Part shown: in pieces, positions 44,761-51,867 of the stretch | How the letters are laid out: every line of letters starts with the position of its first letter | Numbering within the stretch: the stretch's first letter is position 1 | IMG/VR virus record: IMGVR_UViG_3300023174_000040 | Coordinates: 62,001-126,000 of that record | Strand: one strand, 5' to 3' | DNA length: 64,000 nt | Made by a program: the position numbers and the translations under genes | Notes under the pieces: model-generated | Databases searched by the model: none | The model's input: the letters and a program-made list of their open reading frames with translations, nothing else | Told to the model about the DNA's origin: nothing

Positions 44761-45645
44761 GTGAAAATGACTAGTTACTCAGAAAAATATCACCAGTTCA
44801 TCTCAAACGTTACTTATGAGGATGTTGATTGTTTCATTAAAAATGGAACTATGATTAATGGGGAAAAGCCCAACAATATTCAAAAGATAGCTTTGTTTTC
44901 AATTATTAAGACAGAACCATATTATGCTTACTGCTATGCTAGGGATGTAATTAAAGACCGGTGGATTGAAGTTGAAGAAATCATAAAGAATAGCCGTCCA
45001 GAATATATCCATCATTATGCCAAAGATGTTATCAAGGGACGGTGGATTGAGTGCGAAGAGATTATCAAGAGTGATCCCCAGTATGCTTATCTTTATTCCA
45101 GAGATGTAATTAAAAATCGTTGGAATGAAGCAGAAGAGATTATTAAGACTGACCCATATTATGCCTATCTCTATGCTAGAGATATAATTAAAGATCGCTG
45201 GATTGAAGCAGAAAAAATTATTAAAACTAGTCCTGCATATGTTTACTATTACACCAAAGATGTCCTAAAAGATAGATGGATTGAAGCTGAGAGAGTTCTA
45301 ATCCACTATATGTATCTTTACGCCAAAGATATAATTAAAGGCAGATGGATCGAATCAGAAGGGATTATTAAAACTGATCCACGATATGCCTATTATTATG
45401 CTAGAGACGTAATCGAAGGTCGCTGGGTTGACGCAGAAGAAACCATAAAAACTAGTCCAGAGTATGCCTGTGGTTACGCTAAAGATGTAATTAAAGGAAG
45501 ATGGATTGAAGCAGAAGAAGTCATCAAGACTAGTCCAGAATTTCTTTATCAATATGCAGTCGAAGTAATCAAAGGAAGATTATCAGAAGAACTTGAAAGT
45601 GTTTTTGAAACACTCGAGTTTCCTTCCGGTACGGTTGGAGAGTAG
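44761..45645 (+). CDS. tandem-repeat (about 25-aa) helical solenoid protein
   Basis: About 9 copies of P.YAY.YARDVIKGRW.EAE.IIK. Confidence 0.85.
   Translation: MKMTSYSEKYHQFISNVTYEDVDCFIKNGTMINGEKPNNIQKIALFSIIKTEPYYAYCYARDVIKDRWIEVEEIIKNSRPEYIHHYAKDVIKGRWIECEEIIKSDPQYAYLYSRDVIKNRWNEAEEIIKTDPYYAYLYARDIIKDRWIEAEKIIKTSPAYVYYYTKDVLKDRWIEAERVLIHYMYLYAKDIIKGRWIESEGIIKTDPRYAYYYARDVIEGRWVDAEETIKTSPEYACGYAKDVIKGRWIEAEEVIKTSPEFLYQYAVEVIKGRLSEELESVFETLEFPSGTVGE
45618..45636 (+). promoter_or_regulatory. conserved 19-nt motif copy
   Basis: gtttccttccggtacggtt upstream of 45679. Confidence 0.65.
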
Positions 45646-46401: not shown

Positions 46402-47328
46402 ATGTCAAAGGAAAGTGCAACAAAGAAGAAGTGTCCCACTTGCGGCAAGGGCATTTCAAGCAAGAAGATTGCAGATAGCCTAATGCCAGATAGCCTGACA
46501 AGTCTTGGGACTGTTGCTAGGCTCAATAAAGATCTCACTAATAAGATCAAGACCCTCACCAAGGATGAAGTGAGGTATATTGTCGATTACTATTATATGA
46601 TTCAAGAGAATCGTAAGCGAAGCACTAATCAGATCACCGCTTTTGGCAAGGATAAAGAGCCTCATGAACTCTTTAGTTTCTTGAACGATCAAACAGAAGT
46701 TCTTGAAACTCAAATCAAACGGGCTATGGATCACTGGACTGATAGTTTTTTGATTGCAAAGATTTTGAAGGATAAGGTTTACGGAATCGGTCCTGTGATT
46801 ACTGCTGGTCTTGTTGCTCATATTGACATCAATAAGGCAAAGACCGCTGGTGCTATTTGGCGTTATGCTGGTCTTGATCCCACAAGTAAGTGGGAAAAGG
46901 GTCAAAAGCGTCCCTGGAACGCCAGCCTTAAAACCCTGTGCTGGAAGGTTGGACAGAGTTTCATGAAGTTCTCTGGTAAGGAAGAGTGCTTCTATGGTAA
47001 GCTTTACAAGTCCCAGAAGGAGTTTCTTGTAAAAAAGAACCTTGAAGGCGGATTCAAGGAACTTGCTGATTCTGTCTTGAATTCAAAGAACTTCAAGAAC
47101 AAGGAAGTTATCGCTAAGTATAAGAGTGGAATTCTGCCAGATGGTCATGTGGATGCTATGGCAAGGCGTTGGGTGGTTAAGTTGTTCCTGAGTAATGTCC
47201 ATGAACTTTGGTGCAAGGTTGAGGGAATTGATTGCCCCAAGCCTTATGTCATGGCTCATTTGGGACACACCCATCATATCATTCAGCCAAATCTTTTGGA
47301 TATTGATGAGTATTTGAAGAAGGATTAA
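46402..47328 (+). CDS. Nop-domain / IS110-related RNA-binding protein, TasA-like (no RuvC or HNH domain)
   Basis: Coiled coil, then VYGIGPVITAGLVAHIDI...GAIWRYAGLDP...WNASLKTLCW...HVDAMARRWVVKLFL (Transposase_20/Nop-like); no N-terminal DEDD RuvC domain and no IS110 SG serine motif; linked to 36-nt dual-repeat arrays. Confidence 0.8.
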   Translation: MSKESATKKKCPTCGKGISSKKIADSLMPDSLTSLGTVARLNKDLTNKIKTLTKDEVRYIVDYYYMIQENRKRSTNQITAFGKDKEPHELFSFLNDQTEVLETQIKRAMDHWTDSFLIAKILKDKVYGIGPVITAGLVAHIDINKAKTAGAIWRYAGLDPTSKWEKGQKRPWNASLKTLCWKVGQSFMKFSGKEECFYGKLYKSQKEFLVKKNLEGGFKELADSVLNSKNFKNKEVIAKYKSGILPDGHVDAMARRWVVKLFLSNVHELWCKVEGIDCPKPYVMAHLGHTHHIIQPNLLDIDEYLKKD

Positions 47329-47536: not shown

Positions 47537-47848
47537 ATGAATAAAAAGTTAAATTTTTTTAAAGATTTCACTTTAGGCGATGTCCTAAACAGTATAAATG
47601 AAAAATTTTTAGTTGATATGTCTAAAGATGAAGAAGAATACTTTCTCTGCCAAATAGAAATAGATAAAGTCGAACAGAATGATGTTGGAATTTTTGATGG
47701 AAAAAATTGTATGCGTTGTCTTTCCTCAAAAGATGTTCTTAAATTAATTGATCATATTTTAACAAAAGTCAAGAGTGAACCAGGTTTCTTGATTTTAACA
47801 TGCGTCATGAGTGAACCAGAAGCCCAGATAGGTTTATTGATAACATGA
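47537..47848 (+). CDS. hypothetical protein whose 3' end is TIGR-like repeat DNA
   Basis: ORF track; the last ~30 codons overlap the satellite array. Confidence 0.55.
   Translation: MNKKLNFFKDFTLGDVLNSINEKFLVDMSKDEEEYFLCQIEIDKVEQNDVGIFDGKNCMRCLSSKDVLKLIDHILTKVKSEPGFLILTCVMSEPEAQIGLLIT
47756..47829 (+). repeat. two-unit satellite TIGR-like array
   Basis: ATTTTAACA-aaagtcaag-AGTGAACC-aggtttcttg-ATTTTAACA-tgcgtcatg-AGTGAACC-agaagcccag-AT. Confidence 0.85.
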
Positions 47849-47926
47849 AAAAATAGTAGAGATCCGGCCGATTCCTTTTACCATTCGGCCCGAGAATAAA
47901 GAAACAAAAAGAAAACCTTAAAAATT

Positions 47927-48382
47927 ATGAATACTATTAAAATAGCCGCTGAAAAAGACTTGAATGTTGTAAATAAAATTTTTGAATGTTGGGACTTTCT
48001 TAAACTTTATGGATTTGTTCACGAGTTTGATGAAGATGAAGAGCAAATTTTAAAGTTTCTAACCGAGACTAAAAAGACTATTGAGAATTTATCAAACAAC
48101 CCAATTCAGACATTGATGGAATCCGATCCACATAATGAAGTTGTAGAAATTAATTTAAGCGGAAACAACGACCCGCTCAAAAGTTTTGTTCAAAATTTAG
48201 AAGATACTAATAAGAACAAAGTATTTTTCTTTTATGCGGATGTTTACGACCAAGTTCCAAATTTTGATTGGCCTAAAATTTGGGAAAAAATTGCCAAAAA
48301 TACAATCGAAGCACTACTGATGGAAAAGTATGAAGTAAAGTGGATGACCGGCGGATACGTTGGCAAATTTCCGGTTGAATAA
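47927..48382 (+). CDS. hypothetical protein
   Basis: ORF track. Confidence 0.7.
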   Translation: MNTIKIAAEKDLNVVNKIFECWDFLKLYGFVHEFDEDEEQILKFLTETKKTIENLSNNPIQTLMESDPHNEVVEINLSGNNDPLKSFVQNLEDTNKNKVFFFYADVYDQVPNFDWPKIWEKIAKNTIEALLMEKYEVKWMTGGYVGKFPVE

Positions 48383-48488
48383 AACCACATCGTCTGACTT
48401 GTGGTCAAAGATTGGAATTGTTTGGAACAATGTTATAAGTTAGACACCAGGTGATCTTTGAAAATCTTTAAATAAAGGAAAAGAAAAA

Positions 48489-48794
48489 ATGAACAATAAG
48501 ACTGGTTCAATGGTTTATGCTAAGATTACAGGTCGAGGTGAGTTTCCTATTGATATGTTAAGGTATGATTTGTGTAGTCCTGCAACAGAAGAAGATAGCA
48601 ATTTGATTCGCAGGACATTTTATGGTCTTAATTATAACTGGATTGTGATTGTTAAGCGACCTTTGCTTGAACGACGGCTTAAGAACAATCCTGTTTTTAC
48701 TTATGGTCGTTGGCAGAGTTTTGGTTGTAATATTGTTGAAGTTAATTCTTGTTACGAAAGTCGGATGGTAAAACCGGAAGTAATTGCCGGGTAA
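48489..48794 (+). CDS. hypothetical phage protein
   Basis: GRGEFPIDMLRYD...GRWQSFG. Confidence 0.75.
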   Translation: MNNKTGSMVYAKITGRGEFPIDMLRYDLCSPATEEDSNLIRRTFYGLNYNWIVIVKRPLLERRLKNNPVFTYGRWQSFGCNIVEVNSCYESRMVKPEVIAG

Positions 48795-48813
48795 TTTAAA
48801 ACTGGAGAAAAAA

Positions 48814-49140
48814 ATGCTAACCGAAATTAGTGTTGTTGCAAGCGATGATGAAACTTTTGAAAAGTATGGTGACGAAATAGACTTTAACATTGAAGTTGAA
48901 TGGGACGAATCAACAATAAGTTGGGAAAGTGATATTTGGAATACTTACGTTGGACCAACTGGAATTTTAGAAGAGTTTGTTGATGCTAAACTTAAGCAAG
49001 CCAAGTTAGATGGCGAACTTATGCCCCTGACTGAAGATCTTGAAAAGTTTGCAATCAAGAAACTGAGGGAGGGATGGCTTAAGGCCACAAATACATCAAA
49101 TGGCTATAGTGGTGAAATCTTAGATATGTATGAAGAATAA
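48814..49140 (+). CDS. acidic hypothetical protein
   Basis: ggaga RBS. Confidence 0.7.
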   Translation: MLTEISVVASDDETFEKYGDEIDFNIEVEWDESTISWESDIWNTYVGPTGILEEFVDAKLKQAKLDGELMPLTEDLEKFAIKKLREGWLKATNTSNGYSGEILDMYEE

Positions 49141-49767
49141 ATGATAAAACAAGCAATGAACGAGTTGTCTATTGAAGAAATTCAAAAAAATTTGAATTTT
49201 ACTGTCCCCAATATCACAGATTTTGTAGAAAAATACAAAAATCATTTTGAAGAATTTCTAAAAGATCCGACAGAACTTGTCACAAAAATAATTCGTGCAA
49301 TAGTGTCTAAAAAAAATTATGAGCATTTAGCAGAAGAATTAGATTTGCCGCCTTCATATGTTTATAGTATTGGCGTAATGATGAAAAATAATTCAGAATT
49401 TATAAAAAATTCTAATTCATTTGAGTCTATGCTTTGTTCTTTTTCAAAAAATATAAATTACGAATCTTTTTTACATTCAACAAAAGCAAAAAAAGAAAGC
49501 GAATTTATAATCAATATTTACAATTTTGAATTTCCAGATTGGTTTGACGAATCTGAACCATTGGTGATAACTTATCCTTGTGATATTTCTAATTACTTTG
49601 AATTACAAGATAATTTACATTTGAGGATTTTTGAAAACAATCATTGGGAATGTCCTTTGAGAAATCAAACTGGAGATAAACATCATTACATTACTGCTGA
49701 AACCAATCTTCAAAAAGAAGAAATGTTGCAATTTTTATTGTTGGGCTGTAAATATTTATTTTATTGA
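49141..49767 (+). CDS. hypothetical protein
   Basis: ORF track. Confidence 0.7.
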   Translation: MIKQAMNELSIEEIQKNLNFTVPNITDFVEKYKNHFEEFLKDPTELVTKIIRAIVSKKNYEHLAEELDLPPSYVYSIGVMMKNNSEFIKNSNSFESMLCSFSKNINYESFLHSTKAKKESEFIINIYNFEFPDWFDESEPLVITYPCDISNYFELQDNLHLRIFENNHWECPLRNQTGDKHHYITAETNLQKEEMLQFLLLGCKYLFY

Positions 49768-49779
49768 GAAGAAAAATTT

Positions 49780-50184
49780 ATGAATATCGGAAAACTTATT
49801 AAAGAAAATCGCAAAAAATTAAATATGACCCAAAAAGAGTTGGCACAAACTCTTGGAATTAGTCATATCACAGTTTGCAGATGGGAAACTAATTTTATAG
49901 TTCCAACAAATTATAACTGGATAGTTCTACAAAATTTATTCGGACTACGAAAAGACAATTTAATAATGCCAACTAAAGGCTTTACACCAGTAAAAGTTAG
50001 AATTATTAAGCCTTTGAAAAAATTCAAGAAAATAAATAAAACCGCTGAAAGAAACAAACAAATTATCGAAAATTATAAAAAAGGAATACCAATAGACAAT
50101 TTAGCAAAATTCTACTCCATAAAGGAAAGTACAATAAAAAGTATTCTACTTAGTCAAAAAATAAAATTAAATGTAAGAGAATAA
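49780..50184 (+). CDS. XRE/Cro-family HTH transcriptional regulator
   Basis: IKENRKKLNMTQKELAQTLGISHITVCRWE; second HTH-like tail IDNLAKFYSIKESTI. Confidence 0.85.
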   Translation: MNIGKLIKENRKKLNMTQKELAQTLGISHITVCRWETNFIVPTNYNWIVLQNLFGLRKDNLIMPTKGFTPVKVRIIKPLKKFKKINKTAERNKQIIENYKKGIPIDNLAKFYSIKESTIKSILLSQKIKLNVRE

Positions 50185-50211
50185 GATTTTGATTCCCAGC
50201 CAGTGGCTGGG

Positions 50212-50840
50212 ATTTTAACAAGAGTCAAGAGTGAACCAGAAGCCCAGATTTTTTCATTTTGCCGGAGTGAACCAACCTGATTGATTTTAACAAGGACGAG
50301 AAGTGAACCATTATTAACGATTTTAACATGAACGTTGAGTGAGTCATCAGACTGGATTTTTACATACTGCCGGAGCGAACCAAGCCCGACGATTTTAACA
50401 AGGTGATCAAGTGAACCAGCGATGGTGATTTTTAACAAAAGAACCATCATTCGATATTTAACAAGGTAGTTGAGTGAACCAATGTGAGAGATTTTGCATG
50501 TATAGTGAGTGAACCTTCGACCCGGATTTTAACACTGATCAAGAGTGAACCTAGCCCTTCGATTTTAACAAGGTAGTTGAGTGAACCACAGTCGGGAATT
50601 TTAACAAATTTGGTGAGTGAACCATCATTCGATATTTTAACAAGGTAGTTGAGTGAACCACAGACCCGGATTTTAAACAGTGATCAACAGTGAACCAATT
50701 TGCTTGATTTTAACAAGGTGAAAGAGTGAACCTAGTGCCGGTATTTTAACAATGTGCGAGAGTGAACCAAATAAGAAGATTTTAACATGATGGTTTAGTG
50801 AACCTAGCTGTGCGATTTTAACAATGTGCGAGAGTGAACC
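50212..50840 (+). repeat. TIGR-like tandem interspaced guide RNA array (18 units, 36-nt period)
   Basis: Alternating ATTTTAACA and AGTGAACC blocks separated by variable 9-nt and 10-nt segments; one unit partly deleted. Confidence 0.88.
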
Positions 50841-50891
50841 AAAAAATTCTACTTGAAAAAAGTTTAAAAGTGTGTTAAAGTGAAAAACCAA

Positions 50892-50910
50892 GTTTCCCTC
50901 CGGTACGGTT
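50892..50910 (+). promoter_or_regulatory. conserved 19-nt motif copy
   Basis: gtttccctccggtacggtt just downstream of the array. Confidence 0.65.
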
Positions 50911-51024
50911 GGAGGGAACTTTGTGAGCGTGACTTGGGGCTGCCTCTCCTAAATCTATAGTCCGTAAAAAGTGTAAAAATAATCAGTGCAGAATAACCCA
51001 CAAACACTCAAAGGAGAAATTAAA

Positions 51025-51381: not shown

Positions 51382-51466
51382 GCTGAAGTGGCGAAACTGG
51401 CGAAACGCAGGGGACTTAAAATCCCCCACATTAGAAACACTGCGGGTTCGAATCCCGCCTTCAGCA
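51382..51466 (+). tRNA. tRNA-Leu(UAA)
   Basis: GCTGAAG/CTTCAGC acceptor, GGGGA-CTTAAAA-TCCCC anticodon arm, long variable arm, TTCGAAT loop. Confidence 0.95.
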
Positions 51467-51482
51467 CTGTAAATAAAAACAA

Positions 51483-51842
51483 GGGGGCGTAAAGGTATCG
51501 ACTGGATAAAAAGATTTATAACTGCATGTCGAGGTTAGTCGAACGGCCTCGTTAAAATTCGACTAAAGCCTTAACTGGCACTGTTAATTACGCAATGGCT
51601 GCCTGATAAAAAGGGCAACCACGAATCTAGGAAGCTAATGTTGGATGCGTCCTAAAATTCGTCGTCAAATCCAACTGGTTTTCTGGTGGTCAACTTACCT
51701 GAAAACGAGAAAATAGGTTGAGAGATTTTAAAGACTTTTGTTTATTGTAATCTTTAAAATCTATTTGAACAATAAACCAAACATGTGAAGAAGTTATATT
51801 TTGATTTATTTCAGGACAGGAGTTCGACTCTCCTCGCCTCCA
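51483..51842 (+). ncRNA. ssrA: tmRNA; tag (A)GTVNYAMAA*
   Basis: 5' GGGGGCG pairs with 3' CGCCTCC-A, G-U at position 3, T-arm caggag-ttcgact-ctcct; tag ORF ggc act gtt aat tac gca atg gct gcc tga. Confidence 0.92.
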
Positions 51843-51867
51843 TTTATAATTTCAACTAAAGGAAAAC

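Follow-up and report, generated by a model that had tools for sequence, protein, structure and literature searches.

The dual-repeat TIGR-Tas systems (Faure et al. 2025, PMC12045711), which include SpTasH of Salicola phage CGphi29 and the TasA systems, are the closest described counterparts of the locus studied here, with which they share a Nop-domain Tas protein, two repeats with common end motifs, a conserved processing histidine and a phage-borne setting without adaptation genes. A dual-repeat TIGR array consists of two alternating 8–12-nt repeats and 9-nt spacers and gives rise to 36-nt tigRNAs (PMC12045711). Published TIGR arrays carry edge repeats at both ends, and the loop of the tigRNA makes no base-specific contacts. 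The origin, expansion and spacer gain of these arrays were an open question in the founding paper (PMC12045711) and are also open in a 2026 survey of 6,685 arrays. Two further comparisons are informative. Box C/D snoRNAs and IS110 bridge RNAs resemble our system in the symmetric Nop-domain dimer, the two guide segments and the box C/D-like frame (PMC12045711), but guide RNA methylation or recombination and do not form long regular arrays of short units. CRISPR arrays, like the array described below, consist of tandem guides, have units that are lost, duplicated and exchanged at the repeats, and are mosaic between close strains. In contrast with CRISPR, the array studied here has 10-nt repeats of two alternating kinds, a guide that is split in two and would read both DNA strands, no Cas1/Cas2, no PAM, and new units without clear polarity towards the leader end.

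The window analysed in this work, a stretch of 64,000 nt from the IMG/VR virus record IMGVR_UViG_3300023174_000040, contains an array at 50195–50841 that is likely the main part of the dual-repeat TIGR array of a large freshwater phage, served by a Tas protein and changing unit by unit, with occasional re-pairing of half-spacers. This is a known kind of system. The original prediction had started from words repeated among the spacers, which we confirm, and had read them as a combinatorial shuffling of half-guides, which is only partly supported. Relatives whose flanking sequences are 96–98% identical to those of the window provide a natural experiment on the evolution of TIGR arrays.

Tas protein and genomic setting

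The locus comprises the following features:

46402–47328, + strand: tas gene coding for a 308-aa Nop-domain TIGR-associated protein, with matches to NF052498 and TasH.
47756–47829, + strand: detached proximal array fragment of 74 bp, made of a loop with a B half, one full unit, and an edge with an A half.
47830–50194, + strand: 2.37-kb cassette of five ORFs between the array pieces, flanked by copies of units a and b.
50195–50841, + strand: main dual-repeat TIGR array, 18 units with a 36-nt period, with edge and loop repeats assigned from array ends and a linkage test.
50889–50923, + strand: hairpin after the array with 13-nt arms, an inverted repeat with no T-run on the + strand and not called by the terminator scan.

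The Tas protein matches the NCBIfam family NF052498 (TIGR_Tas_endo, named “TIGR-Tas system RNA-guided endonuclease”) over residues 57–270 with 184.8 bits, well above the cut-off of 100 (E 2e-54), and its residues 101–297 match TasH of Salicola phage CGphi29 (PDB 21kl, E 1e-16 with phmmer). Its H289 aligns with SpTasH H296, and the H296A mutant of SpTasH has been described as catalytically inactive in pre-tigRNA processing. Unlike TasH, its nearest solved relative, the protein has no HNH motif: inspection of residues 1–87 found no histidine, a single CxxC and no HNH catalytic motif, and the family search matched neither HNH nor RuvC, so that the N-terminal nuclease typical of TasH and TasR was not found. 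Judging from its sequence, Tas is apparently a nuclease-less, TasA-like protein which, lacking a nuclease motif, would most likely bind or repress its targets rather than cut them.

The original prediction had also stated that the window contains neither cas1 nor cas2, and the same is true of the entire 323,267-bp record (64% complete according to CheckV), in which searches for cas1 (TIGR00287) and cas2 (TIGR01573) gave no match while the controls were positive. The absence of both genes from the record and the 10-nt repeats of two kinds set the locus apart from CRISPR-Cas. What had been proposed as a guide array with split spacers proved to be a dual-repeat TIGR array with a tas gene upstream. 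It is also larger than the span 50400–50840 first reported, since it extends over 50195–50841 and includes the detached fragment.

Whereas the arrays of three relatives (L003, L013 and L020) open directly at the tas stop codon with a repeat of the GTGAACCA type, the main array lies here 2.9 kb downstream of tas and is separated from its proximal piece by the five-gene cassette. The proximal fragment is 96% identical to units 1–3 of the array of L002 and runs into the 3′ end of an ORF at 47537–47848. The DNA of the cassette has no match in the L002 and L003 genomes, and a single one of its ORFs (48489–48794) has a distant protein match (52%) elsewhere in the L002 genome. Another, at 49780–50184, codes for an HTH regulator (phrog_8, RstR family). 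Among the copies of units a and b on the two sides of the cassette, the proximal one resembles the L002 allele and the distal one the L016 allele, and the split array looks like the product of recombination, as after a single crossover between two array alleles. A contig (X6/X2) that had been considered a candidate for a new chimeric unit turned out to correspond to the window’s own proximal fragment. A tRNA-Leu gene (anticodon TAA, 51382–51467) and a full-length phage-borne tmRNA (51483–51845, Rfam RF00023, 139.6 bits, tag GTVNYAMAA) are found just downstream of the array; the L013 array is likewise followed by a tmRNA.

Edge and loop repeats

Parsing of the sequence revealed a tandem array of 18 units on the + strand, built on two distinct alternating 10-nt repeats, GAGTGAACCA and GATTTTAACA, as in dual-repeat TIGR arrays. 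Each unit is composed of an edge repeat (G)AGTGAACCA, spacer A, a loop repeat (G)ATTTTAACA and spacer B, the variable stretches between the two repeats being 8–9 nt each, similar to the 8-nt spacers of SpTIGR. The period is 35–37 nt throughout the main array, with the exception of one broken unit of 27 nt. The first edge is degenerate (CCCAGCCA) and the 3′ end of the array is GTGAACCA. We parsed 11 arrays in total, those of the window (W), L002, L003 and eight metagenome contigs, and in 11 of 11 the edge and loop repeats are alike in starting with GA and ending with (C/A)CA, that is, they share a terminal box C/D-like motif. They differ in this respect from the TasR repeats, which begin with UG and end with CCA, whereas those found here begin with GA and end with CCA or ACA. 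A search of the array against Rfam matched no family.

Array ends and linkage concur in the assignment of the two repeats: the edge repeat is GTGAACCA and the internal loop is GATTTTAACA. Wherever the ends of a related array are intact, a repeat of the GTGAACCA type is found at both. In the linkage test, which covered 200 units and 333 distinct half-spacer contexts from the 11 arrays, pairs of contexts with a common exact 9-mer kept the loop partner while having an unrelated edge neighbour 38 times and showed the reverse 0 times, these pairs not being independent events; the loop partner was conserved in 57 of the 74 classifiable pairs. The opposite register, with ATTTTAACA as edge repeat, is ruled out by the same two lines of evidence. 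The 38-to-0 asymmetry may reflect an edge preference of the recombination mechanism or selection against chimeric guides. With GTGAACCA as the edge, the partner of a half-spacer sits across the loop, and the neighbour across GTGAACCA belongs to the next tigRNA. Comparison of the related arrays also showed that the ATTTTAACA loop repeat is variable in both length and sequence, in contrast to the invariant GTGAACCA edge, and this variability fits a loop devoid of base-specific contacts. More distant arrays, in the IMG/VR contigs L006 and L007, keep the GTGAACCA-type edge with a loop repeat that differs from unit to unit, and include small pieces separated by coding-like sequence.

If the locus works like its published TIGR-Tas homologues, the + strand would be transcribed and cut within the edge repeat between GAGUG and AACCA, yielding a 36-nt tigRNA composed of AACCA, spacer A (8 nt), GAUUUUAACA, spacer B (8 nt) and GAGUG. 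SpTasH uses 8-nt spacers and has A as fifth nucleotide, which fits a 5′-AACCA followed by the spacer. The Tas dimer would place A and B on opposite strands of a single 16–18-bp site, which the apparently nuclease-less protein would most likely bind or repress. The 8-nt 3′ overhangs that have been reported imply that one target strand reads A and then the reverse complement of B. The relatives show that units undergo duplication, deletion, replacement and transfer between the array variants of phages with 96–98% identical flanks, a minority of events breaking in the loop repeat or inside a spacer and leaving chimeric units or scars. Conservation of particular A-B pairs between lineages speaks for information in the variable parts, which those of iterons or partition-site repeats, acting as DNA sites for a binding protein, would lack. 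In relation to this last reading, an HTH gene does adjoin the array, but within a cassette that is absent from relatives having the same array.

Whole-unit turnover and re-pairing of halves

The units of the window that bear on the reuse of half-spacers, named by their A and B spacers, are:

50411–50437, + strand: broken unit 7, 27 nt instead of 36, a 9-nt deletion having removed spacer B together with the beginning of the following edge.
50438–50473, + strand: unit TCATTCGAT/AGGTAGTTG, first copy, the same A-loop-B unit as 50617–50652.
50509–50544, + strand: unit TCGACCCGG/CTGATCAAG, paralogue of 50653–50689.
50545–50580, + strand: unit AGCCCTTCG/AGGTAGTTG, a true re-pairing of the spacer B of the duplicated unit with an unrelated spacer A.
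50617–50652, + strand: unit TCATTCGAT/AGGTAGTTG, second copy, a whole-unit duplication.
50653–50689, + strand: unit CAGACCCGG/GTGATCAAC, paralogue of 50509–50544.
50726–50833, + strand: three terminal units, the first and third with the same spacer B, ATGTGCGAG, and different A spacers.

All the repeat counts on which the original prediction was built are correct. The word AGGTAGTTG occurs at 50464–50472, 50571–50579 and 50643–50651, ATGTGCGAG at 50752–50760 and 50824–50832, and (A)TCATTCGAT at 50447–50455 and 50625–50633; TGATCA is found in three half-spacers, GACCCGG in two and TGCCGG in three. This redundancy is far beyond chance. When letters were shuffled inside the 35 half-spacers, 0.009 exact 9-mer duplicate pairs were expected against the five observed (0 of 2000 shuffles reached five), and with duplicates collapsed nine 6-mers remained common to at least two half-spacers, compared with 1.9 expected.

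The edge/loop register changes what these words mean. The three downstream partners formerly attributed to AGGTAGTTG do adjoin it, yet on the far side of the edge repeat, and are therefore part of the next tigRNA, as the 38-to-0 linkage indicates. Two of the three copies of AGGTAGTTG belong to a duplicated whole unit; TCATTCGAT, listed among the reused words, is not re-paired and has AGGTAGTTG as its partner both times. The pair also occurs in L002 and, with one mismatch in each half, in L020. Only the third copy of AGGTAGTTG is re-paired, with an A half, AGCCCTTCG, that differs from TCATTCGAT at 9 of 9 positions. An identical unit in a contig from another lake and a close variant (AGCCCGACG/AGGTAGTTA) in L002 mark this re-pairing as an established one. 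The TGATCA and GACCCGG families are not shuffled halves either: they sit together, with fixed pairing, in the units 50509–50544 and 50653–50689, which differ at 2 of 9 positions in each half and are the product of a whole-unit duplication followed by divergence, the source of both families. The two units with ATGTGCGAG have A halves that differ at 6 of 9 positions, and all three terminal units are identical in L002. A sequence one mismatch away from ATGTGCGAG, ATGTGAGAG, occupies slot A of the unit at 50474–50508, so that the ATGTG[A/C]GAG family is present in both slots within the window. The reused half-spacers are, in summary, one whole-unit duplication, one diverged pair of paralogues and a few true re-pairings.

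Comparison with close relatives shows how the array changes. The Tas proteins of the window and L002 are 99% identical, with flanks 96–98% identical, and the two arrays have a backbone of 12 common units in which about three bases differ overall. What sets them apart is one extra unit close to the start, a gap of two units, the replacement of two units by two unrelated ones and of two units by three; these gains, losses and replacements occur in mid-array. A contig from a further lake shows a third mosaic, i-s-k, in which L002’s unit s stands between unit i and W’s unit k. L003 and L018 have a common downstream flank and many common units in scrambled order, and L003 contains an internally duplicated block of five units, with one unit exchanged for another. 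All these relatives are metagenome contigs that could be strain chimeras, and our search among deposited phages found no near relatives. The turnover takes place in whole 36-bp units and is much faster than point change, and what is inherited and exchanged is the 36-nt tigRNA unit, not the half-spacer. New units show a weak and inconsistent tendency towards the leader end. In L013, the first two units, directly 3′ of the tas stop codon (L013:2181–2252), are identical, a tandem duplication at the leader end.

Re-pairing of halves does occur. Among 148 distinct 8+8 unit types, 42 type pairs have a common exact 8-mer; in 27 of them the partner half is related (at most 2 mismatches), in six it is intermediate and in nine it is unrelated (at least 5 of 8 positions differ), as compared with 0–1 unrelated-partner pairs in controls with reversed or complemented sequences. 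One event is directly legible in unit 7 of L002, whose A half corresponds to that of W unit 6 and whose B half corresponds to that of W unit 8, with the loss of the two intervening units: this is one loop-to-loop deletion, helped by the AGGT common to the sequences after the loops. Loop-repeat junctions do, then, create chimeric guides now and then. Untidier events have left scars, such as unit 2 of L020 with its two loops; the second scar is the broken unit 7 of the window, whose 9 missing nucleotides are present after 50441 in a contig from another lake. Re-pairing is consequently real but a minority mode, accounting for about one fifth of the type pairs with a common 8-mer. Aligning the related arrays, the check that had been proposed for the shuffling idea, thus uncovered some re-pairing of halves, but identified the whole A-loop-B unit as the main module across the 11 arrays. 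Similarly, duplication and short-repeat recombination have both reshaped the array as envisaged, with re-pairing confined to the smaller share.

Swapped guides, targets and competing explanations

Two guides occur as X/Y in one lineage and as Y/X in another, namely ACCTGCTTG/AGGACGAGA and TCAGACTGG/TACTGCCGG. The former is found with ACCTG(A/C)TTG as spacer A and AGGACGAGA as spacer B in W, L002, L016 and L018 (twice), and swapped, as AGGACGAAA/ACCTGCTTG, in L003. The latter is found in W and L002 and swapped, as TACTGCCGG/TCAGACTGT, in L010, L014 and L015. Given the published geometry, an A/B swap would specify the same duplex read from the other strand, meaning that the same target can be encoded in both orders. 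Crossing over at the edge or loop repeats does not turn X/Y into Y/X. The swapped guides suggest that the two orders arose independently from one target, or else that half-spacers changed slots and selection then acted on them. They constrain any model of adaptation and provide a directly testable prediction of binding.

Our searches for targets covered the phage genomes themselves. No self-target was found in the 323-kb genome at up to 2 mismatches of 18, in both registers and four geometries, and when the guides of the 11 arrays were compared with the W, L002 and L003 genomes (8 nt, a gap of 0–2, 8 nt), the 14 one-mismatch hits did not stand out from the 10–19 obtained with wrong geometries. 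A tiled target, represented by a 28-nt composite site derived from one exact reverse-complement pair of half-spacers, was also considered and is absent from the viral and genome collections. The spacers have a G+C content of 48%, compared with 35–36% for the phages, which may reflect a target richer in G+C or the need for stable 8-bp duplexes. Short palindromes, uncommon in a genome of 35% G+C, abound among the half-spacers at 50400–50700 (TGATCA three times, CCGG in five half-spacers).

Several explanations for the reused half-spacers compete with that of unit-wise turnover accompanied by occasional re-pairing. If half-spacers were themselves the shuffling module, the array would diversify mainly by re-pairing at the short repeats and would need no acquisition. 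Such a mechanism finds support in the nine type pairs with unrelated partners, in the fact that AGGTAGTTG, ATGTGCGAG and ACCTGCTTG each have at least two unrelated partners, in the presence of the ATGTG[A/C]GAG family in both slots and in the loop-to-loop deletion that separates W from L002. We nevertheless hold it to be quite improbable: the loop partner is conserved in the large majority of cases and the reverse linkage never occurs, most of the examples first cited dissolve in the correct register, the W and L002 replacement units at the same array position have no half in common, and 168 of the 206 half-spacer families are singletons. Such singleton sequences cannot originate from shuffling, and some source is still required for them; this number and the two swapped guides, which cannot be made at the repeats, leave the claim of shuffling “rather than acquisition” unsupported. 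Even less credible, to the point that we give it hardly any weight, is an assembly artefact of a repetitive array in a mixed phage population. It is true that all sequences are short-read metagenome contigs and that several array variants coexist in the same lakes. However, two contigs from two other studies, one of 528 nt and one of 294 nt, show 0 differences to 50126–50653 and 50242–50535, respectively, so that the arrangement is no accident of assembly, at least up to the third AGGTAGTTG; independent re-assembly covers only 50126–50653, and an independent contig sought for 50654–50896 was not found. In addition, the duplicated unit and the three terminal units are also present in L002, which comes from another sample, and the exact repeats are shorter than 45 nt.

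The remaining alternative, which we consider unlikely, though less so than the other two, is that the shared halves belong to independent guides against targets with a common 8–9-bp half-site, for instance sites that derive from a repeated motif, or from different alleles, of the host or of a rival element. Selection on targets would explain both the reuse of halves and the A/B swaps, since the swapped guides in other phages specify the same duplex and do not derive from recombination at repeats. Both kinds of AGGTAGTTG-bearing units are conserved in several lineages, as expected for established guides and not for fresh chimeras, and the paralogous units differ in A at spacer positions 1–2, SpTasH being known to tolerate a mismatch at position 1 of spacer A. 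On the other hand, a search of the three phage genomes revealed no target, tiled sites should produce reverse-complement relations between half-spacers but these occur no more often than by chance (21 versus 15–17 in controls), and the chimeric unit of L002, where two units of W are missing, resembles the product of a simple deletion. Unit-wise turnover with occasional re-pairing remains our preferred explanation of the array.

A more speculative proposal, which we regard as rather doubtful, is that TIGR arrays acquire new guides from DNA and do so without regard to orientation. Such uptake would also fit the extra units located directly after the leader in L016 and in a contig (X8) from another lake, as well as the duplicated first unit of L013. 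If true, each half-unit (box C, 8 nt, box D) would derive from the 5′ half of one protospacer strand, and the swapped guides would offer a first handle on the adaptation step. In a weaker variant, half-spacers would switch between slot A and slot B, both orders being maintained by selection.

As for expression, none of the RNA runs searched holds the locus, and no promoter stands out for the main array. Just before it, a hairpin (50196–50212, CCCAGCC..GGCTGGG) followed by ATTTT (to 50216) is formed by the decayed first edge and the first spacer; the L002 edge at this place is intact. The structure resembles a terminator for the HTH gene and could terminate read-through into the main array. Published dual-repeat arrays have a rho-independent terminator after the final edge, whereas the hairpin with 13-nt arms that follows the array in the window lacks a T-run and was not called as a terminator. 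Beyond this hairpin, a 51-bp stretch (50917–50967) shows 3 differences to deeper contigs (8–26x) from three other lakes; searched as exact words in the genome and viral collections, this stretch returned nothing. The flanks of the matching contigs are G+C-rich, unlike the phage, and the stretch may be shared with another organism. Upstream of tas, the ORF at 44761–45645 gives many staggered matches of 67–75% to its L002 homologue (over 44902–45580), indicating internal tandem repeats.
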